Sequence record: ON631220.1
Strand: one strand, 5' to 3'
DNA: 64,000 nucleotides
Shown: positions 2,575 to 61,359 of the stretch, piece by piece
Position numbering within the stretch: the stretch's first letter is position 1
How the letters are laid out: each line of letters starts with the position of its first letter
Translations under genes and position numbers: made by a program
Notes under the pieces: model-generated
Told to the model about the DNA's origin: nothing
Database searches by the model: none
The model's input: the letters and a program-made list of their open reading frames with translations, nothing else

Positions 2575-3177
2575 ATGCAGCGCAATAATGACCCGCAGCA
2601 AGTAATCATGTCGATTGAGATGTACAATAGCCTACTGGCTATGGCTAATGATTCACCTCATTACACGACAAAACTTATCCAACGTCACGTGCGAAAGATG
2701 AATCCTTTTTTACAACCTGCACATCTAAAGAATGTCAGAACTAAGGAAGCTATTCGGTCCCAACGTATTCGTGAAGCTCGGGCTTTCTTCGAAGCCAATC
2801 ATAGAAAAATTCTGTACGCAAAGGTTGATATGGGTAACTGTAAAAAAGGAGATGATCCGGTTTACTTCCCATGCATATCTGAACGTATTGCCAAGAATAG
2901 ACAACTAATCCAAGTTCGTCATGCCAATGAAGTTGGTTATGGACGGTGCATCCGGTTGGTAGAGGCTAAATATCTCACAACCATTATTCCTGATGGATAT
3001 ATCCAAGGAACTGGGCCGTATAAAAAATATCTTGTTAAAGAGAATGGTCCTTACGATATCCGTGAACAAGAAGAAAAACGTAAACAAGCTTTTTCGAGTG
3101 AGATAGCTAAGAAGTTTGAGTTCAAACATGATTCTTACGATATGGATAATCTCAAAAAGAATTATTATACACAATGA
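2575..3177 (+). CDS. Hypothetical protein, N-terminal domain paralogous to 28092..28475
   Basis: ORF with SD GGAG; the N-termini align visibly. Confidence 0.75.
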   Translation: MQRNNDPQQVIMSIEMYNSLLAMANDSPHYTTKLIQRHVRKMNPFLQPAHLKNVRTKEAIRSQRIREARAFFEANHRKILYAKVDMGNCKKGDDPVYFPCISERIAKNRQLIQVRHANEVGYGRCIRLVEAKYLTTIIPDGYIQGTGPYKKYLVKENGPYDIREQEEKRKQAFSSEIAKKFEFKHDSYDMDNLKKNYYTQ

Positions 3178-3304
3178 GATTAGTATAAATGGACATTAGT
3201 TTATCTCCAGTATGAGTATTCCAACTTCTTAAATATTACTAAAGAGCAGACTATGAATATATCAGTGTTTGCTCTTTGGAGGTAATTACTCTGGAGCATC
3301 TAAT

Positions 3305-3637
3305 ATGTGTGCAATTCCTGTAATACCTATATCAAATGACATCACTGTTATTAAGCCAGGTGATACAGTTTGGTCAACAGGTGTTCTCGGTATGAAAGCA
3401 TCCTGTGAGCATCCACCAGCGCTATTCTGTATACGGGGTGATGAACTTGAAGTTCTAGAAATTAGCCCTCCCACGGAATATGAGAAAAAAGAAATGTATA
3501 AGTGCCGCTTAAAAAGAGGCACTGGTCATTTCTGGATTTATCGTAGTGGGTTTACTAAAATAAAGCCATTTAATCACAATATGACTGGTTATGAGTTTTG
3601 GGATGGTGAGAAAATTAGAGAATATGGTGGGCATTAG
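3305..3637 (+). CDS. Small SH3-like beta-barrel hypothetical protein
   Basis: ATG 3305 follows GGAG (the track starts at TTG 3269); IKPGDTVW...RGDELEVLEI pattern. Confidence 0.6.
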   Translation: MCAIPVIPISNDITVIKPGDTVWSTGVLGMKASCEHPPALFCIRGDELEVLEISPPTEYEKKEMYKCRLKRGTGHFWIYRSGFTKIKPFNHNMTGYEFWDGEKIREYGGH

Positions 3638-17155: not shown

Positions 17156-17356
17156 ATGGATCGTCTTGATGAAAGAATCGCATTCAGTGTAAGGTCGTAC
17201 AAAATTTTCAATGCTCTTGCCAATGGCCGAGTTCGAGCATTGATTATTAACTTTAAAGATGGTAAGGGTACGATCATGTCTATTAGTGATGATCGCCGCC
17301 ATGATAAGCATCTCTGGTTCAACTGTGGACTAGTGGACAATCCAAGGATCAAGTAA
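17156..17356 (+). CDS. Hypothetical protein
   Basis: GAGGA SD; TAATG coupling to thyA. Confidence 0.7.
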   Translation: MDRLDERIAFSVRSYKIFNALANGRVRALIINFKDGKGTIMSISDDRRHDKHLWFNCGLVDNPRIK

Positions 17357-18432
17357 TGGAACAATATCTTAATTCAATTCGTTTAGTTAAAGAACTCGGT
17401 GTACATAAAGGTGATCGTACTGGTACTGGCACCCAAAGCATGTTTGGTCAACAAGAACGTTATAGTTTACGTAACAACGTTCTACCCGTAGTAACCACTA
17501 AGAAAATTCATCTTCCATCCGTTATCCATGAATTATTCTGGATGCTTTCTGGTGATACTCGTGTAGATTATTTAATTGAAAATGGTGTACGCATTTGGAA
17601 TGAATGGGTTAAACCAAATACCGCGTTATATGCGCCGATGACTGATGAGGCCGTTCTCAAAGCAGTAACTACCCTCATTGGTGCCCCATTCGTAATGTAC
17701 GTCCATTGCATGAACGATGACTCTACTCCAATCATCGAGACTGTAGTGGAGTTCGAGTCGGGTATGGCCCCAGAGACTATTCAGGCTTTCTGGGATGAAC
17801 ATCCAGTTAACCGTGAGGAAATCCAATACGTCATTGGAGTTAGTGAAAAGTCGTGGAATAGGCTCGCTACTGAAGGATTCGATGAAGCCAAAAATCCTGA
17901 AGGTATTCATACTGAATATAACAAACGGCTGTATCGTGCTTTGACGCATAAAGAACCAGCACGCCTGGTCGGCGGCGATCTAGGTGCTGTTTACGGTAAG
18001 ACTTGGCGTGATCTTGAAGATACTCGTGTGATCCCAAAACACGAGTGGGTTGATTACGAGGCACGTGGCTTTGACTTCGTAGTTGATATTCCAGGTACTT
18101 GCATGGAGAATGATCGGTGTGTTGTTACTAGACGTATCGATCAGATTCAAGACGTGATTAATCAACTTAAGACTAACCCTGATTCTCGTCGGATCATCGT
18201 TTGTGCATGGGCACCACAACTTGTCGATGAACAGTCACTCCCACCGTGCCATAGCTTTTTCCAGTTCTGGACTCGTGAACTGACGTTAGAAGAACGGTAT
18301 GACTGGGCCCAACTTAATGACACCGAAGCTCAACGTATTTTCCTTGAAGGTGCGCAACCGGAAACTGATCACGCACTGTGGGATAAACTTGGTGTTCCTA
18401 AACGTGCATTGAGTTGCCAACTCTACCAGCGT
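17356..18432 (+). CDS. thyA: Thymidylate synthase, exon 1 (spliced product 459 aa)
   Basis: DRTGTGT, IHELFWML, PDSRR, catalytic LPPCH; ends at SCQLYQR. Confidence 0.97.
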
Positions 18433-19522
18433 TAAATACTAGCGCCTTCTAGGAGCAATCCTAGTCGAATAACCTATCTAAACGGGGAAACTCTCTATGA
18501 GACAATCCCGTGCTAAATTGACTACGGTCATAAATGCCTAACGACTATCGAAACCACTCTGAGAAGAGGAAGGGAGTAGAGTAGGACCAAGTGGTCCGAA
18601 AAGGTAGGGGTCTCTTTTTAAGAGATCGTGATATAGTCTGTCCTGCATGGAGACATGCAGCGGTTTACTTAATGACTCCGCCAGATAAGGAGGGTGTTAT
18701 TAATGACGTAGCTTATGTGTATTGCCTATTCACCAAAGAAGGAAAGGTATATGTCGGAAGTGCGCGAGATTTAGTTAAGCGCGTTCAACGACATTTCAGA
18801 GACCTTAGTAATTCCAAGCACCATAACTACCCATTACAACAAGAATACGATAACGGTGAAAGATTCTCGTTAAAGTACTATCGTTGTGAAAGTCGGGAAT
18901 CAGCATTTACACTCGAACAGATGTGGATAACCAAGCATGAAGAAGAAGGTAACCTTCTTAATATTGGTAGACACTCCAAGGGTGGTGATAACTTAACCAG
19001 GCATAACCTCAAAGAACAAATCATCGAGAAGCGGAGTGATACAATACGTATCAGACTTGATGAGATTGGAGCCGAGGCTCGTCAGGAAAAGTATGGTCGA
19101 CTAGGTGAGCAGAATGGGATGTATGGTCGTACTCACACAGAAGAAGTTAAGGTAGCTCTATCCGAGTTACACACGGGTAACACTTACCGTCTTGGCATTA
19201 AAGCTAGTGATGAGACAAGAGCCAGGATGTCGGAGATAGCTTCTCAGAGAACAGGCGAACGTAATCCATTCTACGGTAAAACACATTCCGAAGAAACCAG
19301 AAAAAAGTTGACGGATAACAAACGCGGTATAAAGCCAACTAACTCAAACAAACTTGAAGTGGACGGTGTTGTTTATTTATCCCAGGCCGATGCAGCTAAG
19401 GCTCTCGGAGTATCACAGGGTACAATAACATACCGAATTAACAGCAAGAATCCAAAGTATTCTGGTTATAAAGTCATTTAAGTAAACGGCTCAGGATTAA
19501 CGACCCTGGGTGAACATAAGAG
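18433..19522 (+). mobile_element. Group I self-splicing intron (1090 nt) in thyA
   Basis: P1 GCGU|UA-AAUAC-UA-GCGC with U.G at the 5' splice site; P/Q/R/S-like elements aaacggggaaac, aatcccgtgc, cctaacgactat, gtgatatagtctg; P9 ctgcatg-gaga-catgcag; terminal G19522; removal restores QR|SVD. Confidence 0.93.
18672..19481 (+). CDS. Intron-encoded GIY-YIG homing endonuclease with NUMOD3-like repeats and C-terminal HTH
   Basis: VYCLFTKEGKVYVGSARDLVKRVQRH; NPFYGKTHSEETRKKL; SQADAAKALGVSQGTI; looped out of a stem formed by 18659-18671 and 19479-19490; start codon uncertain. Confidence 0.9.
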   Translation: MTPPDKEGVINDVAYVYCLFTKEGKVYVGSARDLVKRVQRHFRDLSNSKHHNYPLQQEYDNGERFSLKYYRCESRESAFTLEQMWITKHEEEGNLLNIGRHSKGGDNLTRHNLKEQIIEKRSDTIRIRLDEIGAEARQEKYGRLGEQNGMYGRTHTEEVKVALSELHTGNTYRLGIKASDETRARMSEIASQRTGERNPFYGKTHSEETRKKLTDNKRGIKPTNSNKLEVDGVVYLSQADAAKALGVSQGTITYRINSKNPKYSGYKVI

Positions 19523-19825
19523 AGCGTCGATACTTTCTTAGGAAAACCCTTTAATATCACGTTCTACAGTCTGCTGACCCATATGTTAGCTAACCAAATG
19601 AATATGGTAGCTGAAGAGTTTATCTGGACTGGTGGTGATGTACATATTTACTCTAACCACCAAGAACAAACCGATCTTCAATTAACTCGTGAACCGAAGG
19701 TTCTACCTACCATTCGTTTTAAAGAAGAAGCTATTGGTAAAGATATTCGGGAAATTGGTGTAGATGATTTTGTTATCGAGAACTACGAATATCATCCACA
19801 CATTGCTGGCAAAGTTGCTGTCTAA
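19523..19825 (+). CDS. thyA: Thymidylate synthase, exon 2
   Basis: SVDTFLGKPFNITFYSLLTHMLA...GDVHIYSNH...IAGKVAV, in frame with track ORF 19583. Confidence 0.95.
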   Translation, partial: SVDTFLGKPFNITFYSLLTHMLANQMNMVAEEFIWTGGDVHIYSNHQEQTDLQLTREPKVLPTIRFKEEAIGKDIREIGVDDFVIENYEYHPHIAGKVAV

Positions 19826-19832
19826 CATAAAT

Positions 19833-19850
19833 GCCTCCCTTCGGGGAGGC
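19833..19850 (+). terminator. Intrinsic terminator (UUCG)
   Basis: gcctccc-ttcg-gggaggc-tttattt. Confidence 0.85.
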
Positions 19851-19932
19851 TTTATTTCCCTTGGAGAAATTCGATGTTCATGTATCTGGATATCGGTAAA
19901 GAAGAGAAATTTCGAATGATTAAGGTGACCAC

Positions 19933-20769
19933 ATGATTGATCCACGACATCCAGTTAGCGATGAGATGCGCGCAATCATCGATGCTGAACTTAATCGCAT
20001 CGAAAAGAAATATGGTGTAAAGGTTATCTATGCCTGTGAGTCCGGTAGTCGTGGATGGGGCTTTGCTTCAACCAATAGTGACTATGACGTTCGTTTCATT
20101 TACATTAACCATCCGAGTCATTATGTTCGTGTGGATAATGAAGCACGTGATACTATTGAAGAGATGGTGTCTAAAGAACTAGACCTGGCTGGTTGGAGTA
20201 TCACTAAGACTCTTCAACTTGCTTACAAGTCTAACCCCACTCTCTTGGAATGGCTAAACTCCCCAATCGTTTACCGTAAGGTTGATCGGGACTACAAGTT
20301 AATCCGTGATGCTGCGCTAAAGCACTTCATCCCTGAATCGAGTTACATGCATTATATCTCGATGGCCAAACAAACCAAAATGCGTTGGTTGTCAGATGAG
20401 AAGGTCCGGATGAAGAAATACTTCTATTCTCTTCGTCCTCTGTTGGCTGCAATGTGGGTCCGTGAAAGTCTGGAACATCCACCGATGGTATTCCATGATC
20501 TACTGCCTCTTCTAACAGATCCTATCCTTTATAAACGTATCCAAGAACTGGTTAATGATAAGGTTGGGGCTACTGAACAGGATCTGATAGATCGTTGCCC
20601 TATATTAGATCAGTTCATCGATTTTCAATTGAGTCGTGAGAAACCAGACTTCGGTAAATACGAACGTCCGGACATCTATGCACTTACCGATCTAGCCTGG
20701 CATTTTGTTGACCAGTACAAGATCGACACATTCGCGAAACTACAGGGTACCGAACGAAGAAAATATTAG
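19933..20769 (+). CDS. DNA polymerase beta-superfamily nucleotidyltransferase (YcgL/PF10127-like)
   Basis: YACESGSRGWGFASTNSDYDVRFIY, NPTLLEWL, KKYFYSLRPLLA. Confidence 0.9.
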   Translation: MIDPRHPVSDEMRAIIDAELNRIEKKYGVKVIYACESGSRGWGFASTNSDYDVRFIYINHPSHYVRVDNEARDTIEEMVSKELDLAGWSITKTLQLAYKSNPTLLEWLNSPIVYRKVDRDYKLIRDAALKHFIPESSYMHYISMAKQTKMRWLSDEKVRMKKYFYSLRPLLAAMWVRESLEHPPMVFHDLLPLLTDPILYKRIQELVNDKVGATEQDLIDRCPILDQFIDFQLSREKPDFGKYERPDIYALTDLAWHFVDQYKIDTFAKLQGTERRKY

Positions 20770-51761: not shown

Positions 51762-51838
51762 TGGTGCCGCCACTCCGAATCGAACGGAGGACCTACGCAT
51801 TACAAGTGCGTTGCTCTACCTAGCTGAGCTATAGCGGC
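51762..51838 (-). tRNA. tRNA-Thr(UGU)
   Basis: Cloverleaf GCCGCTA...TAGCGGC-like acceptor, anticodon TGT, TTCGATT loop, encoded CCA. Confidence 0.97.
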
Positions 51839-51894
51839 GTAATCTTCTACATATAGTGTATATGAAAGTATTATTTTATTATAATAGATAAAGT

Positions 51895-51926
51895 TATATT
51901 CAAACCATTTTAAACAGTATATTACT
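51895..51926 (+). promoter_or_regulatory. Early promoter (TTTAAACAG-TATATTAC), divergent from tRNA-Thr
   Basis: TATATTAC at 51918-51925. Confidence 0.85.
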
Positions 51927-51981
51927 AATGTGATATTACTAAAAGTAATATTTTCTATTAATTGTAAATAGGGTACTAGAT

Positions 51982-52119
51982 ATGAATATTGATCCAAAAA
52001 CTCTTGGTATTATTGTTAGCGCCACTATTGGCACCATAGGTGCTCTTATTCTTACGTATGGTATCGTGAGAGCAGTACGCGGAAATAATAAACCCGATGT
52101 AAAAGATGTAGCAGAGTAA
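51982..52119 (+). CDS. 45-aa early single-pass membrane protein, not in the ORF track
   Basis: MNIDPKTLGIIVSATIGTIGALILTYGIVRAVRG...; own promoter and terminator (52128-52154). Confidence 0.75.
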   Translation: MNIDPKTLGIIVSATIGTIGALILTYGIVRAVRGNNKPDVKDVAE

Positions 52120-52176
52120 GATAACATAGAGCTAGCCCATTATGGGCTAGCTCTTATATTTATTTTTTTATTTGTT

Positions 52177-52812
52177 TTAACTTGGGGTACTATAATAAAT
52201 AAATTTAGTTAATTCGGCTTCTTGCTCTTTGGCTATATCATTTTTCGTTTGCTTAACATTAGTGTAAGATTCAATAAATAACCAACGCTGATCATATTCG
52301 GCTAAGTCATTGAATTCAATTTTCTCGAATCGCCATGACTGAACAGTAGTTCTGATTAGATTACCTGACTTATTAACAATATAACCTTGCATAGTATCAA
52401 ATAACTTGTCCGATTCACCGAGAATAAATATTAGATACACATCATCTGTATTTTTGGTATGCATTGATTTTAATTTATAAATACATGGCCTAAAAGAATC
52501 GTAATTTTTATAATATTCTTTGATTTCTAGAGCAGCATCAATCATCATCTTGGCGCTATTCTGAATGCCATTATTAAGTAGATAATTATTAAGCTCTTTT
52601 AATGAATCATCTGTCAGTGATGCTTCGATATGTTCTTCACTTATAGGGTCGCTATAAACTAGTTTATTAATAGCTGAATTAACAATATTTAGTTTATCAA
52701 CATCATAAGCTACTAATGTTTGCTTGCCAACATTTATTTTTAATACTTTATTTGAATTATTAATAAAGTCGTCTAGATCTAGTGTATTAAAATGAAAAGC
52801 CATTTGAGTCAC
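52177..52812 (-). CDS. Hypothetical protein
   Basis: AAGGTG SD. Confidence 0.75.
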   Translation of the reverse strand: MTQMAFHFNTLDLDDFINNSNKVLKINVGKQTLVAYDVDKLNIVNSAINKLVYSDPISEEHIEASLTDDSLKELNNYLLNNGIQNSAKMMIDAALEIKEYYKNYDSFRPCIYKLKSMHTKNTDDVYLIFILGESDKLFDTMQGYIVNKSGNLIRTTVQSWRFEKIEFNDLAEYDQRWLFIESYTNVKQTKNDIAKEQEAELTKFIYYSTPS

Positions 52813-52961
52813 CTTTATGTTTTCCGTAGTGTTAAATTTTATTAACGCCCGGTTTCTAGTTGAGTTATATGTAGGGTTAACCTACAAATAATAATGACTT
52901 TATGTATATTTTTACTTATAAATAGACCCCTCTATATAGAGGGGTCTTATGCCGTATAAAG

Positions 52962-53822
52962 TTATTTTAGTATAGGTCTAAATACAAAAATCACATCAAC
53001 TTCATTAGCTATGTCAACATCATATTCAATACCATCGTTATCGATAGCAACTAACATGGTATTATTTCTTGGAGATGGTGTTGATGTGAGGAACTTTACA
53101 TTATCTGGCAGTGATAAATTAGTTACCGGGGACTGGTCTGTTTGGATGCCTGTCTGAAAAGCTGTACCCATATAACGCTTGAATTCGTTTAATGTTGGAA
53201 CATATACCTCCCACTTAACGTCCTGCATATCTATTATACGTCCTTGTTGAGTTGGACCACCTATATGTTCTATCAATTCACTCGGCCATACATCGGACAT
53301 ATCTCCAGACCGTCCCATGTACCCCGCATGGTAAACAGCCACAGCGACAGCTTTCTCAATACTAGATGTATCATGAAAAGCTACATACTCATTATCAATA
53401 AAATAAGGGGTTGGAGCCTCATCAAGATTCATTCCTGGGATGCTATATGGCGAAGAACCAATTGGTCTAAGGGTTGGTCTATTTTCACCTTTGTATGACT
53501 TTGTCAACCTGGCATATTGTCCATCACCGGCTTCAAGCTTTGTATATCCCAATACACTTTGCCATTTACTACTTACACTAAGAGTACGCATTGGTCCTGT
53601 ATAAGCTAATTGACCAAATATATCCTTATATTTTAAGTTCAACCAAACGCATGTATCTTCAGGGTATCTGGATGGCCAGAATCCTGCTATTAAATCCCAA
53701 TCATAGTAATAGTGGGGTGGTAGGTTATTGTAATCCCAAGGTATCGCATTGGTATACGACCAAAATGTAACGATCGGTGTAGAACCAGGCCAACCTCTAA
53801 CATTTTTAAGAGTGATGTACAT
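52962..53822 (-). CDS. Putative virion structural protein (FN3-like/YTGP paralogue family)
   Basis: Start at 53822 by TAATG coupling; YTGP...LEAGDGQY; terminator at 52924-52947. Confidence 0.7.
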   Translation of the reverse strand: MYITLKNVRGWPGSTPIVTFWSYTNAIPWDYNNLPPHYYYDWDLIAGFWPSRYPEDTCVWLNLKYKDIFGQLAYTGPMRTLSVSSKWQSVLGYTKLEAGDGQYARLTKSYKGENRPTLRPIGSSPYSIPGMNLDEAPTPYFIDNEYVAFHDTSSIEKAVAVAVYHAGYMGRSGDMSDVWPSELIEHIGGPTQQGRIIDMQDVKWEVYVPTLNEFKRYMGTAFQTGIQTDQSPVTNLSLPDNVKFLTSTPSPRNNTMLVAIDNDGIEYDVDIANEVDVIFVFRPILK

Positions 53823-54676
53823 TAATTTACTCCTGATTCTTGGATAAAATTTAATATGGGTTTCCAATACCAACTAACATTAGCATCAATAGTTGGGTTA
53901 AAAGTGGTAATGGTTGATGACCCATACTTACTCAGATCCTTAAATGCTCTAGTTGAATTCGCACCTACTACAGTCATAATTACCCTGACATCATCTGCAT
54001 TTTTATTAACCTGATCACTAATTGACCGGATCATTGATTTTCTAGGGTAATCAGCTGGTAGTGTATATGGTCCAACAAACCGACCATCCATAACTTGCAT
54101 ATAGAACGAAGTTGGCAATGATGGGACATAAAAAGAATATTTACAATTACCTTTAACTATAGTTCTATTATTATCTACATTATTAATTAGCTCAGATAAT
54201 TTGTCTATCGGTATCTCGATATAACCCATATATGGGAGAAAGTAAATATCTGATTTATGTTTAATTTTTGTCCATTGATCAGTCCAATTTATGGCATTTT
54301 CCGATTGCCCATTAAACATCATTAATAGATCTTGAAGACTAGGAAGCTCCGGACTAGTTACCCTATCTAACAATGCAGCTCCATCTGCTTGCATCATAGG
54401 TTCTAAGAAACCACCTGGTCCATATTGCGAAACAGCTTTAAATGTAAATACTGGACTAATGGCTGTGTCGCCGCCTTCTCTTACAGTCCTAATGCGATAA
54501 TCGTAAACATTACCAATTACCACATCACGATCAATAATAGCTGTCGTGAATCCGTCTAGTTTCTGGATTGGTTGGTTTATAGGAGTATCCGGAATAGGTG
54601 TACCTGATAACTCGCGGTATACTTCAATACTTGTAATTGATCTAGAATTAGGATTCCTAATTTTAAAGGTAATCAT
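53822..54676 (-). CDS. Putative virion structural protein (FN3-like/YGPG paralogue family)
   Basis: IEVYR...DRDV...YDYRIRTV...SQYGPG. Confidence 0.75.
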   Translation of the reverse strand: MITFKIRNPNSRSITSIEVYRELSGTPIPDTPINQPIQKLDGFTTAIIDRDVVIGNVYDYRIRTVREGGDTAISPVFTFKAVSQYGPGGFLEPMMQADGAALLDRVTSPELPSLQDLLMMFNGQSENAINWTDQWTKIKHKSDIYFLPYMGYIEIPIDKLSELINNVDNNRTIVKGNCKYSFYVPSLPTSFYMQVMDGRFVGPYTLPADYPRKSMIRSISDQVNKNADDVRVIMTVVGANSTRAFKDLSKYGSSTITTFNPTIDANVSWYWKPILNFIQESGVN

Positions 54677-56619
54677 ATCGAAACCTCAGCATAAGTTGTA
54701 AATATCCGACTTGTGCCAACTTGTACATCTGTGACTGGGATGATTGGTGCATCGATTGGATCGATTAATCGAATAACATAGAAACTTGATGTAAACGATT
54801 CATTAAGCCAAGGTTGATTATGCATAAGCACGAGCTTATCTTCGTAAAACGCTCCATTTAAAGATGCTCTACTGCTATTACTTAATCCTGGTATCGCTAC
54901 GGTTATTTTCAACCAGCGGTTTTCATTAGGTACAAATTGATATAAGTATAACTCACCTTGTTTCTCATCAAGAGATGCCGAGCCATACATGAAGATAGTA
55001 TCTCGCCAAATATGAATTTTACCACCTTTGGTGGTTGGTAATTCTGTACCTTGTTGAGTTATCTTGGTTCTATATGTATACGAGTCAGTGTCTTCAGGTA
55101 TAGTTAATTTATATGTCGCATTTGTAAAACCATTAGTACTTCTTTCTGGAGCAACCCATAAGAAATAATCTTCATGTGGTGCTATTGGACCGCCGCCACC
55201 GTCGTAGAAATTAGACCGATTATAGACTGTAAATGTACCGTCAAATGTATCCAGATCCGCTGTTGCAAAATTATACTGTCCGGAAGGAATTACATTACCA
55301 TACCCGCCAATATATAAAAGTCTTTGACGATCAGTGATTTTATCATAATACTTCGTAACACTAGCACCATAATAAAATTGTAAACTATTCGTTATAGTTG
55401 ACCAAGAACCTTCTGGCGTACCATCATCCTCCCATACCTGAATGTCATTGTATAATTCAGCATACGTATATTCGCTACTGCCTATCTTTTTGGCGCCGCC
55501 CATACAGTAGATTTTATTCCCGTTAACCCAAGTACATGCGTTATATACCCCAACTGGCATATCCGCATGTACTTGCCTATCAGATCCATCCAAATTAATA
55601 CTGATATGTTTAGTAGTGGCCGATGCATATGAATTAAAATGGCTATAAACACCACCAAAGAAATGGGCACGTCCGTTAATAATTTCAGATTGACAGAACA
55701 TCATGCGATCAGTTGGATCAGCAGGAATGATATTTACATCAGGGCTTGGCCATGCCATATCACCTCTATTCATTAACTCGACCACCATATAAAGTGGTCC
55801 CTTAGTAGTCCACTCTGTGTCTGAAGACACTCCATCTAATCCAACTGTTCTGAATTTATTACCCTGTGATCCGATATCTACGACTGGTGATTTATATGAA
55901 TGCGTGTTACAATTACCTATAACTCGATCACATGTAAGACCCATAGGGGAATCTGGATATAACTTAACATATAGTTCAGCATACTCGCTTGTTGTCATCA
56001 GTCTGAACTTAAATGAATAATTGTTATACGTTACAGGTTTCCCTTGCTCAACTTTAGTTGTTAAAGAATCGTAAAATGTGCGGCTGAATACACCTAATCC
56101 GTCTCCGTATGATAGTAGAGCACCATCATTATAAAGATCTTCAGGACTACCATAGAAAATAGGTGTATTAGAAATAAATAACACATTCCCATGATAACTA
56201 CACTTCTCGACCTCTATTGTTTCATGATCGATTCCTTCAAGTACAGTACATGATGGTACTAATTTTTTAGCTTCATCTATTGACAATATGACGTTCAAAG
56301 GTAATGTACCATATCGACCAATATAACTATCACCACGTAAGATTTTATCTGGGGTATTCTTATCAATCTGTGGTCCAGTATAATAACGTTTCATTGTTGT
56401 GTATAAAGGACCAACTACTTCATTGCCATTATGTACAACTGATACCCTATAATAAACCATGGTGTTGAGTATGAGGGTCTCATCGGTGTAGCTACTTGTA
56501 TTACCAGGTAATACAAGTAGTACGGGCGGCAAATCTTCTGCATCAAATGGGAAATAATGCCGATATATCTTTATAGTAGTGGATGGATCTGAATTATAGT
56601 CAGTTAATTCAATTCTCAT
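54673..56619 (-). CDS. Putative virion protein: FN3-like + YTGP domain + C-terminal Kelch propeller
   Basis: IYR...YTDE...YYRV...YTGP...GD-x3-GRYG; Kelch motifs HFFGG, YCMGG, LYIGG, FMYGS. Confidence 0.8.
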   Translation of the reverse strand: MRIELTDYNSDPSTTIKIYRHYFPFDAEDLPPVLLVLPGNTSSYTDETLILNTMVYYRVSVVHNGNEVVGPLYTTMKRYYTGPQIDKNTPDKILRGDSYIGRYGTLPLNVILSIDEAKKLVPSCTVLEGIDHETIEVEKCSYHGNVLFISNTPIFYGSPEDLYNDGALLSYGDGLGVFSRTFYDSLTTKVEQGKPVTYNNYSFKFRLMTTSEYAELYVKLYPDSPMGLTCDRVIGNCNTHSYKSPVVDIGSQGNKFRTVGLDGVSSDTEWTTKGPLYMVVELMNRGDMAWPSPDVNIIPADPTDRMMFCQSEIINGRAHFFGGVYSHFNSYASATTKHISINLDGSDRQVHADMPVGVYNACTWVNGNKIYCMGGAKKIGSSEYTYAELYNDIQVWEDDGTPEGSWSTITNSLQFYYGASVTKYYDKITDRQRLLYIGGYGNVIPSGQYNFATADLDTFDGTFTVYNRSNFYDGGGGPIAPHEDYFLWVAPERSTNGFTNATYKLTIPEDTDSYTYRTKITQQGTELPTTKGGKIHIWRDTIFMYGSASLDEKQGELYLYQFVPNENRWLKITVAIPGLSNSSRASLNGAFYEDKLVLMHNQPWLNESFTSSFYVIRLIDPIDAPIIPVTDVQVGTSRIFTTYAEVSI

Positions 56620-56621
56620 GG

Positions 56622-57591
56622 CTACACCTCCTTCGGTTTAGTTAGACCTGTATAAACTAGAATTGGCCAAATAAGCATTTTATTCCATACGTCATCTGTG
56701 GCTACATTAACTACTTCGGTATGTAGTTCTTTTGCTCTTAATGGATATACTGCATCTCTACTTGTCCAATTAATAGCTGTACATTCATTATCAGTCCAAT
56801 CTGAACTAATTATATATTTTATTTCGGTATCTGGAAATCTGGCACTCAATGGGTCATAGAACATATTTAAACCACTGTTTAATGTAAGTCTACCACCTGT
56901 TTTGTTACCTGTCTCAGCATCTTCAACACGAGCATACATCTCTGTAATAACTGCCATCATTGACCGCAGTTCACCTGGGAAATGCTGCACATTATGGTTT
57001 GGATTATTATGATGTTCGGCTGAGGGTATTATTATTTTCCAATCATGTAAACCTATTGTTAATGGAATTGCACCACCATTAATTAATGTTTGCATGATTT
57101 CACTATCTCTTGGTAGTTCCGACCCAATTGCCAATGGATATGGGAAGGTACCTCTAACAGTACCACCTATTGCGAATTTATGAAGTTCTGCTACTTCTAG
57201 ATAGTTACCTGTAATTGGCCCTAAACTAAATGCTTCACGAACCATATTAAACGATGGTAATGACGGTAAGTCCATTGGGAACTTTCCAAAATAACCAAAA
57301 CGTTCATCTCCAAATTGGAAAATAGCTGGACCAGGTCCAGTGTATGGGATAGCTGTAAATGTGAACATATCCGATGCTTCAAATTTTTGTGATCCATAGA
57401 TCAATCTAAAGCGATAATAATATGTTTTTTTTATGTTCCACGGTTGTATCTTGATAAGATGTTATCCCTGGTCCAACTGTAGCAATTAATTCAGCATCTT
57501 CAATATTATCGAATTCGTAATCGGCTCGATAAATTTCAGTGGAGTGATATTTTGTTTTATTAGGATCAAGCCATTTAAGTTCAATTATCAT
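56622..57591 (-). pseudogene. Putative virion protein gene split by a +1 frameshift in an A8 tract (track ORFs 57406..57591 and 56622..57404)
   Basis: Removing one A at 57425-57432 gives ...EHKKTYYYRFRLIYGSQK...YTGPGP, matching the paralogues. Confidence 0.85.
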
Positions 57592-57739
57592 CCGGTATAA
57601 CCTCTGGTTCAGTCACGGTATTATCTAAATCGATAACCTGGAAACTTGCTGAAGGTGGTAAACTACCTTCGTATATGTCTATAGCATCCACAACAGGTTT
57701 TAAATTAACAAGTGGTGTAAATAATAACGCCTCAAACAT
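57581..57739 (-). CDS. 52-aa protein beginning MFEALLF, not in the ORF track
   Basis: GAGGT SD; overlaps the next start; N-terminus resembles MFELLLS of 58722..59729. Confidence 0.7.
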   Translation of the reverse strand: MFEALLFTPLVNLKPVVDAIDIYEGSLPPSASFQVIDLDNTVTEPEVIPDDN

Positions 57740-57906
57740 TTAAATACCTCTTCTAAAAATTACTATAATTTATAGTTAATGACATATGCAAAGCCATTAA
57801 AAATGACTTCGCATATGCGTACTATATTTTATTTAGACAACAATGTCATATCATAACAACATAAAGCCCTCCATGACGGAGGGCTTTTATTTTACCTATT
57901 TATATT

Positions 57907-58431
57907 TTAACTAAAACGAACTACAATCACACTAGTGCCAAAAGTATCAGCTACCCACTGATTAAATTCTTTATCAGTAATACCTCGTAAATTTAGATTA
58001 TAAGATGCATTATCTACAAGTATATAGCGGATATCTGAAAGTAAATTTTCATTAAAGTCTTTCTGGATCGTTGATAGTCCAGATTTATGGATATAGCTAC
58101 GTAGTTTAAATGTAGTTAAATATGGAATAATGTTATCTGGTGTTTTGGATAGTTTATCTTGAGCACCACGTCGAATTCTTTCGTCGGTGAATACTGCCAA
58201 ACATTCACCAGGGTAGCGTTTTGAAAATTCCATTAATGCTGTAGTACTACCAGATTGACGACCAATAAAAAACCCTACTGTTCTATGATCACGTATAGTG
58301 ATATGACTGACATCATTAAGATGATAATGCATCCCATACTTATTCCAATTCTCATTAGTTTTATATATCAATGCATCCAGGATAGCCTGGTAATCAACAA
58401 TAGTTTTTACAAACTGATTTGTGTTATTCAT
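57907..58431 (-). CDS. Degenerate P-loop NTPase-like protein
   Basis: IGRQSGST (Walker A-like, Lys replaced) and YILVDNAS (Walker B-like). Confidence 0.55.
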   Translation of the reverse strand: MNNTNQFVKTIVDYQAILDALIYKTNENWNKYGMHYHLNDVSHITIRDHRTVGFFIGRQSGSTTALMEFSKRYPGECLAVFTDERIRRGAQDKLSKTPDNIIPYLTTFKLRSYIHKSGLSTIQKDFNENLLSDIRYILVDNASYNLNLRGITDKEFNQWVADTFGTSVIVVRFS

Positions 58432-58721
58432 TATAGAAGTTCCTTTATTACAATGTAGTATATAACCTTTATTAAATTAGGTTATATACCGGCTATGGAA
58501 AGGCCTCGTCACCTTCCCTTCACCTATATTAAATATCAATAGTGGTTATAAAGAACGAGATACACTCATTGACATAATATAGCCAGGGGTGGCAAACCCC
58601 TGGCACTCAGACACACTCTATAATTAAATCTACCACCGAGTGTATTTAGTGGATAGCTTTAGGATTATCTAGATACAGTAATCCTACATAATATCATCGC
58701 ACTAGTATTTTTATCTTTAGT

Positions 58722-59729
58722 TTAATCGAGAACTAATGGGGCTACTTTAACTTGATATATACCAGTTAATAATTGGCTTTTCAACATATATGCTCCACCA
58801 CCAACTGCCGTTTTAGATCCACCAACAATAATCATACTGCCATCTGGACCTTTAGCTATTGACGATATATTAAGGAACCCTATGCCAAGTTCTAATGGTT
58901 CAGCCCATTTACGACGCCTAATGTTAAAACGTTGTGCAAACATTTTAGTTACGCCATTGACATCAACTGCATTAATATAATTAAAATATTCTCCATCTAC
59001 ATAACCGTTACCTTGCCAGATTGTTCCTTTATCAGCAGGTATAATCATCCAAGGTGTTTGCTCCCATACTAAGGTAGTTGCATTATATCGATAAACTTCA
59101 AGATTAGGTATGTTCTTTGTATTATCCCAGCCGCCAAAATGATAAAAGTAACCATTATAGAAGAATAACTGTTGACCTGAACGAGCACCACCTGAATAAT
59201 CTTGTCCACTAAGCCATGTCTTACCCGATGGTTTTAACCGCATTGCATTTACCCCAACTGGGTTTACACACAAAATAAGATCATTACCATCTGATGCGGA
59301 TGCTGTACCCCAAAATGGTACAGGCCCACTATATCGTTTAACCCTGCTACCTGTACTTATATCAAAATGTTGTATAAAGTTAGATGTCCCCGTACCACCA
59401 TTACCCGCCGCGTTCCATCCAGTAATACCGCCATAAACAATAAAGTTATTCTTATGTAATGTTCCAAATCCTAAGGATACACCTGGTAGGAATGTTCCAG
59501 AAGCTGTTGCACCTGCATCTGCGAATGGTGATATGGTAAAACGTCTGAATACAGTTGCGGCTGTTTGTCCTTCAGTATGATGTCCAGATCCAACATATAG
59601 TGTATTTCCATCCACATATGACATAGTACCAGCTAGTGCCACAGGTAGATCACCTAATTTAATAATTTCATTAAATCCAACCAAGGGTAACTCTTCGCCT
59701 ATATCTGGCGATAATAGTAATTCAAACAT
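58722..59729 (-). CDS. Kelch-repeat beta-propeller, putative virion protein
   Basis: IVYGG, YHFGGW and IIVGG repeats; MFELLL N-terminus. Confidence 0.8.
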   Translation of the reverse strand: MFELLLSPDIGEELPLVGFNEIIKLGDLPVALAGTMSYVDGNTLYVGSGHHTEGQTAATVFRRFTISPFADAGATASGTFLPGVSLGFGTLHKNNFIVYGGITGWNAAGNGGTGTSNFIQHFDISTGSRVKRYSGPVPFWGTASASDGNDLILCVNPVGVNAMRLKPSGKTWLSGQDYSGGARSGQQLFFYNGYFYHFGGWDNTKNIPNLEVYRYNATTLVWEQTPWMIIPADKGTIWQGNGYVDGEYFNYINAVDVNGVTKMFAQRFNIRRRKWAEPLELGIGFLNISSIAKGPDGSMIIVGGSKTAVGGGAYMLKSQLLTGIYQVKVAPLVLD

Positions 59730-59783
59730 GAGTGTGCTCTCAAGTAAATCATTTTAATTCATAAGATAACCCATGGCAACATA

Positions 59784-59807
59784 AAAGAGTAGCCGAAGCT
59801 ACTCTTT
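59784..59807 (-). terminator. Terminator of the tRNA cluster (UUCG on the minus strand)
   Basis: aaagagtagc-cgaa-gctactcttt. Confidence 0.85.
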
Positions 59808-59813
59808 AGAATT

Positions 59814-59900
59814 TGGCTGGTAAGGTAGGATTCGAACCTACGGTGGGCTTTCGCCAACGGATTAACAGTCCGCTCCCTGCTACCACTCGGGTACTTACCA
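59814..59900 (-). tRNA. tRNA-Asn(GUU), 87 nt, with long variable arm
   Basis: TGGTAAG/CTTACCA acceptor stem, G73, CCA; anticodon GTT; variable arm TGGCGAAAGCCCA. Confidence 0.9.
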
Positions 59901-59909
59901 ATGAAATCG

Positions 59910-59946
59910 TAAAAGTCACTTGCTCTACCGACTGAGCTATCACGGA
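59910..59946 (-). pseudogene. tRNA 5'-half remnant, truncated in the anticodon loop
   Basis: TCCGTGA-TA-GCTC-AGTCGGTA-GAGC-A-AGTGA-CTTTTA; no 3' half follows. Confidence 0.85.
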
Positions 59947-59952
59947 ATTAAA

Positions 59953-60029
59953 TGGCGCGCCCAAGGGGACTCGAACCCCTAACCACCCGCGTGACAGGCG
60001 GGTATTCTAACCAACTGAACTATGAGCGC
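59953..60029 (-). tRNA. tRNA-Asp(GUC)
   Basis: Cloverleaf, anticodon GTC, G73, CCA. Confidence 0.97.
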
Positions 60030-60082
60030 GAACGTATGGACATGACTTCTTACATAGTATTATACAATCAGTAATATTTTTA

Positions 60083-60430
60083 TTATGGTCGGTCAGTCCA
60101 GTGCTTAAAATAATTGTCATCTTTAGGGCTACCATGTTCAGCAAGGATGTTCTTAAGTTCCTCACTAGACAGCTTGACCCTAACCCCTACGGGAATATCC
60201 AGTTCAGGGCACGGTTCAGTTTTACGACTGATAATCAGATTATCAGTCCCATCTTTAAAAATAAAGATGAACTGAGTTTCGCTATCACTGATCTTTTTCT
60301 TAATACATTGCTTTACTTCTGGATGTTGTTTATGAATTTCAATAAACGCATCTGTAAGAGACATGCACATTAATTTTGGACTACAAAATGTGGAATATAC
60401 ACTATACTGAGATTCAGTTAAATTATTCAT
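60083..60430 (-). CDS. Hypothetical protein
   Basis: GGAG SD, between tRNA genes. Confidence 0.75.
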   Translation of the reverse strand: MNNLTESQYSVYSTFCSPKLMCMSLTDAFIEIHKQHPEVKQCIKKKISDSETQFIFIFKDGTDNLIISRKTEPCPELDIPVGVRVKLSSEELKNILAEHGSPKDDNYFKHWTDRP

Positions 60431-60517
60431 ATTTACTCCGTATGCTTGAAATAAAATTCAATGGTATTTAGCACCACCCCTAAGAATCGGATTAATGGTT
60501 GTTTCAATATATTTTTC

Positions 60518-60739
60518 CTAGGGACATTTAAAAATATAAATCGAATGGTTATCTCTGTCGGCTATCTTCAGAGTATTCTCATTTCGAATAGTTTCAAGAG
60601 ACTTGTATTTATGCTCCAGCATATCCAGGTGAGAAATACATTGTCCCCTATTTTCAAATAGGATCTTACTCTCATTAGTCGAAGTGAAACCAAATAATCC
60701 AACTTTGATAGATAATACTAACATTATTACTGTATTCAT
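60518..60739 (-). CDS. Small exported two-cysteine protein, similar pattern to 15756..16013
   Basis: GAGGA SD before MNTVIM; LFENRGQC...IFKCP. Confidence 0.7.
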   Translation of the reverse strand: MNTVIMLVLSIKVGLFGFTSTNESKILFENRGQCISHLDMLEHKYKSLETIRNENTLKIADRDNHSIYIFKCP

Positions 60740-60791
60740 GTTTTCCTCAATGAGACAGTATAAAACCTCCCCCAAGTGGGAGGCTAGTGTA

Positions 60792-60868
60792 TGGTGGGCC
60801 CAGCAGGACTTGAACCTGCGACCAAGCGATTATGAGTCGCCTGCTCTAACCAACTGAGCTATAGGCCC
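60792..60868 (-). tRNA. tRNA with CAU anticodon, most likely tRNA-Ile2 (reads AUA after lysidine modification)
   Basis: GGCGACTCATAATCGCTTGGTCGC arm matches the recalled gammaproteobacterial ileX arm; A73; paired G1-C72, so not an initiator. Confidence 0.9.
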
Positions 60869-60874
60869 TTTTAT

Positions 60875-61168
60875 TTATTCTGGTAGGAATGTTCCGTCTT
60901 TTTGACGGACTAATACACCTGACCATTTGAATGTATTTGTATCACTAACAGGGCACTCTCTAATTACATTGGTTCTAAATGTGCCATGTGGATAGGTTAC
61001 AGTGAATGTAATATGATTATTACAAACATGCAATACAGAAGACTTTGCTTCTGTTAGATAGTGTAAGCCTTGAGCTAATTGAATATTAGTTAATTCAGGG
61101 TCACTAAGAATAGCGTAAAGAGCTGTTCCTATAATTTGATGTTCCCATGATATCCATTTATTATCCAT
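60875..61168 (-). CDS. Hypothetical protein
   Basis: AGGA SD, between tRNA genes. Confidence 0.75.
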   Translation of the reverse strand: MDNKWISWEHQIIGTALYAILSDPELTNIQLAQGLHYLTEAKSSVLHVCNNHITFTVTYPHGTFRTNVIRECPVSDTNTFKWSGVLVRQKDGTFLPE

Positions 61169-61189
61169 CCTATTTACCTATTATTAAAA

Positions 61190-61265
61190 TGGTCGGAGTG
61201 GGGAGACTCGAACTCCCGACATCCTGCTCCCAAAGCAGGTGCGCTACCAACTGCGCTACACTCCG
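61190..61265 (-). tRNA. tRNA-Pro(UGG)
   Basis: C1-G72 cloverleaf, anticodon TGG, CCA. Confidence 0.97.
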
Positions 61266-61274
61266 TATTTAAAT

Positions 61275-61359
61275 TGGTGCCCGAAGTCGGATTCGAACCG
61301 ACAAGACCGTAGCCGGAAGATTTTAAGTCTTCTGTGTTTACCAATTTCACCATTCGGGC
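61275..61359 (-). tRNA. tRNA-Leu(UAA)
   Basis: Class II cloverleaf, anticodon TAA, A73, CCA. Confidence 0.97.

Follow-up and report, generated by a model that had tools for sequence, protein, structure and literature searches.

A putative mobile group I intron with a GIY-YIG endonuclease within the gene for thymidylate synthase in the jumbo phage OMKO1

We examined a 64-kb stretch (64,000 nucleotides, hereafter the window) of the genome of Pseudomonas phage OMKO1, a Phikzvirus (ON631220.1), and found its thymidylate synthase gene, thyA, interrupted by a group I intron. A 2.6-kb query from around the intron matches this record with 100% identity and unchanged coordinates. All coordinates are window positions, and features are on the plus strand unless noted. 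Exon 1 (17356–18432, 359 codons) was taken from the list of open reading frames (ORFs) and from Pfam PF00303; it ends ...LSCQLYQR, encoded at its 3′ end by TAC CAG CGT, and an in-frame TAA follows directly at 18433–18435. The intron occupies 18433–19522 (1090 nt). Exon 2 (19523–19825, 100 codons, likewise PF00303) starts with SVDTFLGKPFNI, opens AGC GTC GAT and keeps its frame open until the stop at 19825. GenBank gives no intron here, annotating instead thyA_1 (17356–18435), a hypothetical protein (18591–19481) and thyA_2 (19583–19825), the last from an internal ATG at 19583 that lies 60 nt 3′ of the true start of exon 2.

The two exons make up one enzyme. The Pfam Thymidylat_synt profile matches exon 1 over positions 1–156 (E 3e-51) and exon 2 over positions 169–266 (E 1.4e-32), and exon 1 holds the PPCH motif of the catalytic cysteine together with two lineage-specific insertions. 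Aligned to 264-aa thymidylate synthase structures of the E. coli type, exon 2 begins at S167 and reaches their C-terminus (167–264); this puts the insertion at the boundary of the catalytic R166 and S167, in E. coli numbering. Joining 18432 to 19523 yields an in-frame ThyA, ...LYQR|SVDTFLGKPFNI, with the motif QR|SxD...PFN restored, so that the restoration of QRSVD claimed in the original prediction holds, at R166|S167. This predicted spliced product is colinear with the uninterrupted 488-aa PHIKZ235 of phiKZ. Whether phiKZ thyA lacks the intron had been left as a question; it does, as do most Phikzvirus genomes.

The call of a group I intron was borne out by the covariance model. Rfam RF00028 (Intron_gpI) matches 18423–18660 over the full model (1–253) with 69.4 bits (E 1.6e-15), above the gathering score of 50 bits, which is also passed by the homologous introns of phages SL2 and Wadjak1 and of the relatives L016, L118, L119 and L120. 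The intron starts with an in-frame UAA and ends in the terminal guanosine, omega-G. In P1 (18429–18445) exon GCGU and intron UA (18429–18434) pair with the guide UAGCGC (18440–18445). The U.G pair in P1 and the terminal G, both recognized in the original prediction, are U18432.G18442 at the 5′ splice site and G19522 at the 3′ end, and both are kept in relatives; the comparison of 3′ splice sites omits L119, whose site found no in-frame placement. In that relative (positions 3279–3300) no 3′ splice site joins QR to SAD in frame with a terminal G, an outcome that an error in the sequence, displacement of the site or one additional codon could explain.

The ribozyme core (18449–18660) was assigned as P2–P9 from the Rfam alignment, with pairs counted on an alignment of eight cores: besides OMKO1 and SL2, it holds four relatives from metagenomes, one that is more distant, and the nrdD intron of phage T4. 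It consists of P2 (18449–18464) with a GNRA loop, P3 (18473–18479/18602–18608), P4 (18482–18487/18506–18511), P5 (18492–18495/18499–18502), P6/P6a (18512–18537) with a UACG loop, P7 (18543–18547/18634–18638) with five invariant pairs, P8 (18609–18627) and P9 (18643–18660), which again has a GNRA loop. A 52-nt insertion in the Rfam alignment, between P7 and the 3′ strand of P3, folds as two further hairpins: P7.1 (18557–18568), a 4-bp GNRA hairpin that covaries in L016 and L119, and P7.2 (18584–18597), in which compensatory changes are present. An earlier placement of P7.1 at 18556–18560/18573–18577 was given up for this covarying hairpin. Extra P7.1 and P7.2 hairpins are a mark of T4-type IA introns, and the predicted fold would place the OMKO1 intron in that subgroup.

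Beyond the core, the 5′ strand of P9.1 (GUUUAC, 18663–18668) pairs with GUAAAC at 19482–19487 and so encloses the endonuclease ORF. The 3′ terminal domain (19482–19522) is made up of that 3′ strand, P9.2 (19490–19495/19505–19510) with the loop AUUAACGAC, the tail UGAACAUAAGAG and omega-G. P9.1 covaries, reading GUUUAU/AUAAAC in L019 and in T4 nrdD and GUUUCCCC/GGGGAAAC in L120, and P9.2 is maintained by several double changes in L016, L019 and L118.

Pairing is kept in 93.8% of the cells of the eight-core alignment, against 37–45% when partners are slid by 1–3 columns, and 24 of 63 pairs are changed on both sides, against 3–8 in the slid controls. None of 500 shuffles matched the observed structure. 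All nine differences between the SL2 and OMKO1 ribozymes fall in loops (with GNRA kept), preserve pairing or lie at unpaired positions, the unpaired ones being 18662, a G.G mismatch beside P9.1, and 19519 in the 3′ tail. Two minor features of this RNA may be recorded. The L9.2 loop AUUAACGAC (19496–19504) repeats the J6/7–P7 sequence UAACGAC(U) (18539–18547), a duplication present also in the T4 td intron and in L016, L019 and L118. The P9 hairpin followed by CGGUUUACUU (18643–18670) scores as terminator-like in a simple scan, which is probably irrelevant to phage RNA polymerases.

The ORF looped out of P9.1 (18672–19481) encodes 269 aa if read from AUG 18672 and 260 aa from AUU 18699. That it is a GIY-YIG endonuclease, as had been proposed, was confirmed by Pfam: PF01541 GIY-YIG (E 4.6e-9, residues 14–91), two copies of PF07460 NUMOD3, and PF20987, the helix-turn-helix DNA-binding domain of I-TevI type. 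Its structural matches are I-TevI domains (PDB 1i3j, E 3.4e-13, residues 182–259; 1mk0; 1ln0), and over 241 residues it shares 33% identity with I-TevI; with the endonuclease of the thyA intron in the Bacillus phage LY2 the figure is 39%. In alignment R37, H41, H50 and N97 correspond to R27, H31, H40 and N90 of I-TevI; Y15 and Y27 align too, and E82 lies within the E-x-x-W-I motif of the I-TevI catalytic E75. The zinc finger of I-TevI was not found: the aligned linker has no Cys, and the C-x-C...C-x-x-C stretch aligns to a NUMOD3 repeat. The finger is a feature of I-TevI in particular, not a hallmark of GIY-YIG homing endonucleases of I-TevI type. The 16 nucleotides of the ORF that differ between OMKO1 and SL2 comprise 6 nonsynonymous and 10 synonymous changes, and this synonymous excess suggests purifying selection.

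A second intron or endonuclease copy was not found within the window; the thyA/intron query also matches a second place in the OMKO1 record, outside the window. Among cultured phages the nearest relative of the endonuclease (41% identical) is in Acinetobacter phage Kimel (L015, 1471–2265), where it is free-standing, on the opposite strand, and directly abuts an uninterrupted td; it may be a homing endonuclease that targets td without residing in an intron.

Translation of the ORF may begin at an unusual codon. AUG 18672 has no Shine-Dalgarno sequence, and a strong GGAGG (18689–18693) sits 5 nt before the in-frame AUU 18699. L016 and L118 have the upstream AUG in another frame but still conserve IND(I/V)(G/A)Y, residues that include the GIY tyrosine. 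On both grounds AUU 18699 is a plausible start. A predicted stem-loop (18669–18703) covers the GGAGG, the AUG and the AUU and would sequester the Shine-Dalgarno sequence; it is predicted alike in OMKO1, L016, L019 and L118 (z-scores between −1.6 and −3.3) and is reminiscent of how translation of the T4 intron endonucleases is controlled. Two other starts were rejected. The GenBank start at GTG 18591 (296 aa) lies inside P7.2–P9, and the frame is closed upstream in relatives; GTG 18717, chosen by gene callers, is unlikely, because it would cut off Y15, the tyrosine of GIY, along with the conserved residues IND(I/V)(G/A)Y. An out-of-frame mini-ORF, AUG-ACN-UAG (18703–18711), lies 9–10 nt after the Shine-Dalgarno sequence and just 5′ of AUGUG (18715–18719); it is conserved in L016, L019 and L118 and might serve translation of the endonuclease as a coupling element or a decoy.

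The intron is present in 12 of the 54 Phikzvirus records that match thyA, representing 11 phages: OMKO1, fMGyn-Pae01, SL2, Wadjak 1, NK1, T2P, U1B, U5, phi9_PA9, KEN51 and PA02. The remaining records, among them phiKZ, KTN4, PA7 and Wadjak 2, have an uninterrupted thyA of 488 codons, and these four named phages miss exactly 18433–19522. Intron copies are 99.7–100% identical to that of OMKO1 (2–3 of 1090 positions differ), except for SL2 at 97.7% (25 differences), although the thyA exons around them differ by 6–50%. In the same phages 10–19 of 303 positions differ in exon 2, and segments of exon 1 differ by 9–52%; divergence of the intron is about 30-fold below that of the flanking exon 2.

Around the insertion, an alignment of 11 thyA alleles reveals a short exon patch that goes with the intron. 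Every intron-bearing allele reads TA(C/T)CAGCGT|AG(C/T)GTC at the junction and every intronless one TATCAAAGA|TCTTGT, amounting to 10 differences in 13 nt (−7 to +6), with Tyr-Gln-Arg-Ser kept and Cys changed to Val. The upstream half (18426–18432) has C..GC.T where intronless alleles have T..AA.A; the downstream half (19523–19528) has AGCGTC for TCTTGT, changing the Ser codon and replacing Cys by Val. Over the first 1120 alignment columns Wadjak 1 exon 1 equals that of intronless phiKZ/PA7, yet this phage carries the OMKO1-type intron and patch, which we read as the decisive case for mobility. In every intron-bearing relative examined the 5′ exon CAGCGU (CAGCGT in DNA) is invariant, and the 3′ exon varies except for AG. 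The phiKZ-type sequence CAAAGA|TCTTGT could not form P1, since it has neither a U at −1 nor GCGU, and it could not form the 2-bp P10 either. An intron copied without its exon tract would then not splice, and patch and intron would therefore always travel together. Read in this way, the 13-nt patch offers a clean case, found in nature, of co-conversion without which splicing would fail. Near-identical introns in diverged exons, with a patch that travels along, point to recent homing, and the pattern as a whole has the marks expected of endonuclease-initiated homing with co-conversion. Immediately upstream of the patch (−43 to −8, 18390–18425) KTN4 and Wadjak 2, both intronless, match the intron-bearing alleles at every position, and the intronless phiKZ and PA7 differ from these at 7 positions; the identity in KTN4 and Wadjak 2 could stem from partial conversion without intron gain, or mark the background of the Wadjak 1 recipient.

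The target of the endonuclease can be predicted from its better-known relatives. I-BmoI binds exon 2, nicks at −2 and about −5 and needs a G at −2; its intronless site is GCCCGT at −6 to −1, and the end of its intron is TAAGTG (PMC3161791). CNNNG is the cleavage motif rule for I-TevI (PMC3161791). The phiKZ-type alleles have CAAAGA at −6 to −1, with G at −2 and with CNNNG satisfied; the OMKO1 intron ends in TAAGAG, with no G at −2; and from +7 to +40 intron-bearing and intronless alleles are essentially identical. From these features we predict that the endonuclease cuts intronless thyA within the Gln-Arg codons, in CAAAG at −6 to −2.

The element would then work as follows. The RNA would fold into P1–P9, and the 3′ domain (P9.1, P9.2 and omega-G) would be brought back next to the core, with the intervening ORF, about 810 nt, looped out, as in the nrdD/sunY intron of T4. 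Guanosine would initiate transesterification at U18432|U18433, and ligation of the exons at G19522|A19523 would give the mRNA for full-length ThyA. The endonuclease would probably be translated at a low level owing to the hairpin that buries the Shine-Dalgarno sequence, and possibly also to an AUU start. By analogy with I-TevI and I-BmoI, its NUMOD3/helix-turn-helix domain would bind the conserved exon 2 DNA (coding SxDTFLGKPFNI), and cleavage by the nuclease domain would follow a few nucleotides further upstream, at the CAAAG (CNNNG) that intronless alleles, phiKZ's included, have in the Gln-Arg codons. Repair off an intron-bearing genome would copy the intron and a short flanking exon tract, CAGCGT|AG, which would provide the P1 partner of the guide and the 2-bp P10.

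Ever since T4 td, phage thymidylate synthase genes have been a textbook setting for group I introns that encode GIY-YIG endonucleases, and the td intron resembles that of OMKO1 in host gene, in T4-type ribozyme family, in the in-frame UAA right after the 5′ splice site and in a nearly identical 3′ tail and L9.2 loop (AUUAACGAC...UGAACAUAA.G). I-TevI and the OMKO1 enzyme are alike in domain order, although the latter has an extra NUMOD3 repeat in place of the zinc finger. The two introns differ in ORF position (P9.1 in OMKO1, P6 in td) and in insertion site: td is inserted after FLG (G|L), and the R|S site of OMKO1 is 21 nt upstream, that is 7 codons, in agreement with the earlier statement of a few codons. 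I-TevI cleaves its own target (CAACG motif) exactly at the OMKO1 insertion position. The nrdD (sunY) intron of T4 is closer in layout, with a compact P1–P9, an ORF looped from P9.1, P9.2, omega-G and a ribosome-binding site in a hairpin just after P9; its core is about 70% identical to that of OMKO1 over 190 nt, the closest in the phage collection outside the thyA-intron relatives. It interrupts a different host gene, however, and its I-TevII showed no similarity to the OMKO1 endonuclease at E 1e-5.

Insertion at the R|S site recurs in other hosts, a Bacillus phage and metagenomic jumbo phages. The thyA intron of the Bastillevirinae phage vB_BceH_LY2, a Herelleviridae phage of Bacillus, has the identical site (...MR|SND...), ribozyme halves about 76–81% identical to OMKO1 and an endonuclease of shared NUMOD3 architecture, but its ORF is inside the core, between P6 and P7, rather than in P9.1. 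The I-BmoI-encoding intron of Bacillus mojavensis and the thy intron of phage beta22 presumably lie 21 bp from the td site, which fits R|S. I-BmoI is likewise a GIY-YIG enzyme that targets thyA, from an intron in B. mojavensis thyA, and its intronless −3 to −1 sequence is CGT, an Arg codon (PMC3161791); the intron ends are TAAGTG for I-BmoI and TAAGAG for OMKO1. From this offset and the published −6 to −1 bases (Table 2 in PMC3161791) we infer that the I-BmoI and beta22 introns share the OMKO1 site, although their hosts are Gram-positive bacteria or phages of these.

Metagenomic contigs, the longest 310 kb, yielded relatives of the endonuclease with 46–67% identity. Each of the six looked up lies within a split, insertion-bearing thyA, and in five (L016, L019, L118, L120 and L121) both junctions are at ...YQR|S. 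The ORF is in P9.1 in five of the relatives and inside the core in L121, as in LY2 and td. This difference in ORF position echoes an old observation, namely that gene, intron and intron ORF assort independently. A scan of IMG/VR with the 14-mer AACGACTATCGAAA gave many other group I introns and chance hits, and no relative closer than those from the protein search.

As a whole, the locus is best explained as a self-splicing intron of nrdD/sunY type in thyA that encodes a GIY-YIG endonuclease and moves by homing with co-conversion, to which we give a probability of about 0.9; the element is probably an active mobile group I intron with an endonuclease of the I-TevI/I-BmoI family. Several points weigh against this explanation, in which splicing, cleavage site and homing are all inferred. 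A strong P10 was considered for OMKO1 and rejected: only A19523–U18440 and G19524–C18439 can pair there, against 4–5 bp in L016 and L118. The start codon of the endonuclease is uncertain, and the equation of E82 with E75 rests on the E-x-x-W-I motif because BLAST gaps the catalytic Glu. The spliced junction, CAGCG T|AGCGTC, keeps CNNNG and a nearly unchanged downstream binding region, and the only visible escape of intron-bearing genomes from self-cleavage is interruption by the intron. The intron could also travel without the endonuclease, by general recombination during co-infection between Phikzvirus genomes with their visibly mosaic thyA. Such recombination would be the whole story if the intron spliced but its enzyme were no longer active in homing, the patchy distribution being due to homologous recombination in co-infection and to vertical descent. 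Such a history would suit the strong mosaicism that thyA of this genus shows apart from the intron, its two hypervariable segments having alleles no more than 45–50% identical, as well as an annotated AUG lacking a Shine-Dalgarno sequence and an enzyme that, unlike I-TevI, has no zinc finger. We nevertheless consider it unlikely: the enzyme's catalytic residues are intact, as are all its DNA-binding modules, the ORF seems to be under purifying selection, the intron is far less diverged than exon 2, and the Wadjak 1 tract sits tight on the insertion site, the classic co-conversion signature of break-initiated repair. It is very improbable that the insertion is not spliced at all, leaving thyA broken in two and the phages reliant on the host thymidylate synthase. 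GenBank does give two separate thyA coding sequences and no intron, but against a broken gene stand the full-model Rfam match, the core helices maintained by compensatory changes, flanking exon nucleotides exactly as P1 requires, and exons whose frame and conserved catalytic motifs persist in 11 independent isolates as well as in distant relatives from metagenomes.

An extension of the homing intron explanation concerns competition between phages. In the nucleus-forming Pseudomonas jumbo phage PhiPA3, gp210 is an HNH nickase encoded by an intron in an RNA polymerase gene; experiments showed that it enters the PhiKZ nucleus and inhibits PhiKZ, relative to which its intron is polymorphic (Birkholz et al., 2024; PMC11620839). 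Thymidylate synthase comes up in that paper solely as something targeted in other phages (PMC11620839). Both gp210 and the OMKO1 enzyme are intron-encoded homing endonucleases of nucleus-forming phages, but the one is of the HNH family with an RNA polymerase gene as its host and the other is a predicted GIY-YIG enzyme in thyA. By this analogy the OMKO1 endonuclease may, as the original prediction has it, enter the phage nucleus and act on intronless co-infecting relatives. That interference is its chief value, the enzyme being imported into the nucleus of an intronless Phikzvirus and breaking its genome, we put forward tentatively. The gp210 precedent (PMC11620839) is in its favor, as is the fact that intron-bearing and intronless phages share hosts (P. 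aeruginosa PAO1) and are nearly identical in the target downstream of the insertion. On the other hand, the sequence has no sign of nuclear import, gp210 belongs to another nuclease family and another gene, and thyA may be dispensable, in which case the effect would hinge on the DNA break itself. A broader combination is similarly doubtful: that nuclear import of the endonuclease gives OMKO1-type phages an advantage in homing and interference over phiKZ-type phages in co-infection, that repeated break repair has turned thyA into a hotspot of recombination that has hypervariable segments, and that translation starts at AUU under a hairpin sequestering the ribosome-binding site.

No description of a thyA intron in Phikzvirus turned up in full-text literature searches; the OMKO1 intron is new and unannotated, while the kind of element is thoroughly known. 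It provides a natural polymorphism among culturable, nucleus-forming phages of P. aeruginosa that are very similar in other respects, with OMKO1, SL2 and PA02 carrying it and phiKZ, KTN4 and PA7 without it. Such intron-plus and intron-minus pairs suit tests of a second nuclease family across the phage-nucleus barrier, of homing between genomes in separate nuclei, and of whether an intron endonuclease bears on the outcome in mixtures of related jumbo phages, such as cocktails. OMKO1 is itself a therapeutic candidate.

The thyA gene of Phikzvirus is unusual apart from its intron. Its ThyA has about 190 residues more than canonical ThyA, 307 residues covering Pfam positions 1–156, and both inserts are hypervariable (17626–17975 and 18296–18388), the second standing directly ahead of QR. 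The first insert occurs in two allele classes with DNA only about 48–50% identical (OMKO1/phiKZ versus NK1/T2P/KEN51/PA02), and the second has an 87-nt indel and is 45% identical. The gene is a mosaic of at least three exon haplotypes.

Just 3′ of the thyA stop lies a hairpin with a T-run (19833–19850) that resembles an intrinsic terminator. In phiKZ a 408-nt ORF (PHIKZ236) stands between thyA and the next gene (window 19826–19932 versus 3024–3563 of the phiKZ locus used for comparison); its equivalent is absent from OMKO1, SL2, NK1, T2P and Wadjak 1 and present in KEN51 and PA02, an indel polymorphism adjoining thyA. The next gene (19933–20769), a homolog of PHIKZ237, encodes a nucleotidyltransferase of the RlaP family (PF10127, ‘RNA repair pathway DNA polymerase beta family’, E 9e-91). 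Six tRNA genes score above the Rfam threshold on the minus strand at 51765–61359, five of them clustered at 59.8–61.4 kb.

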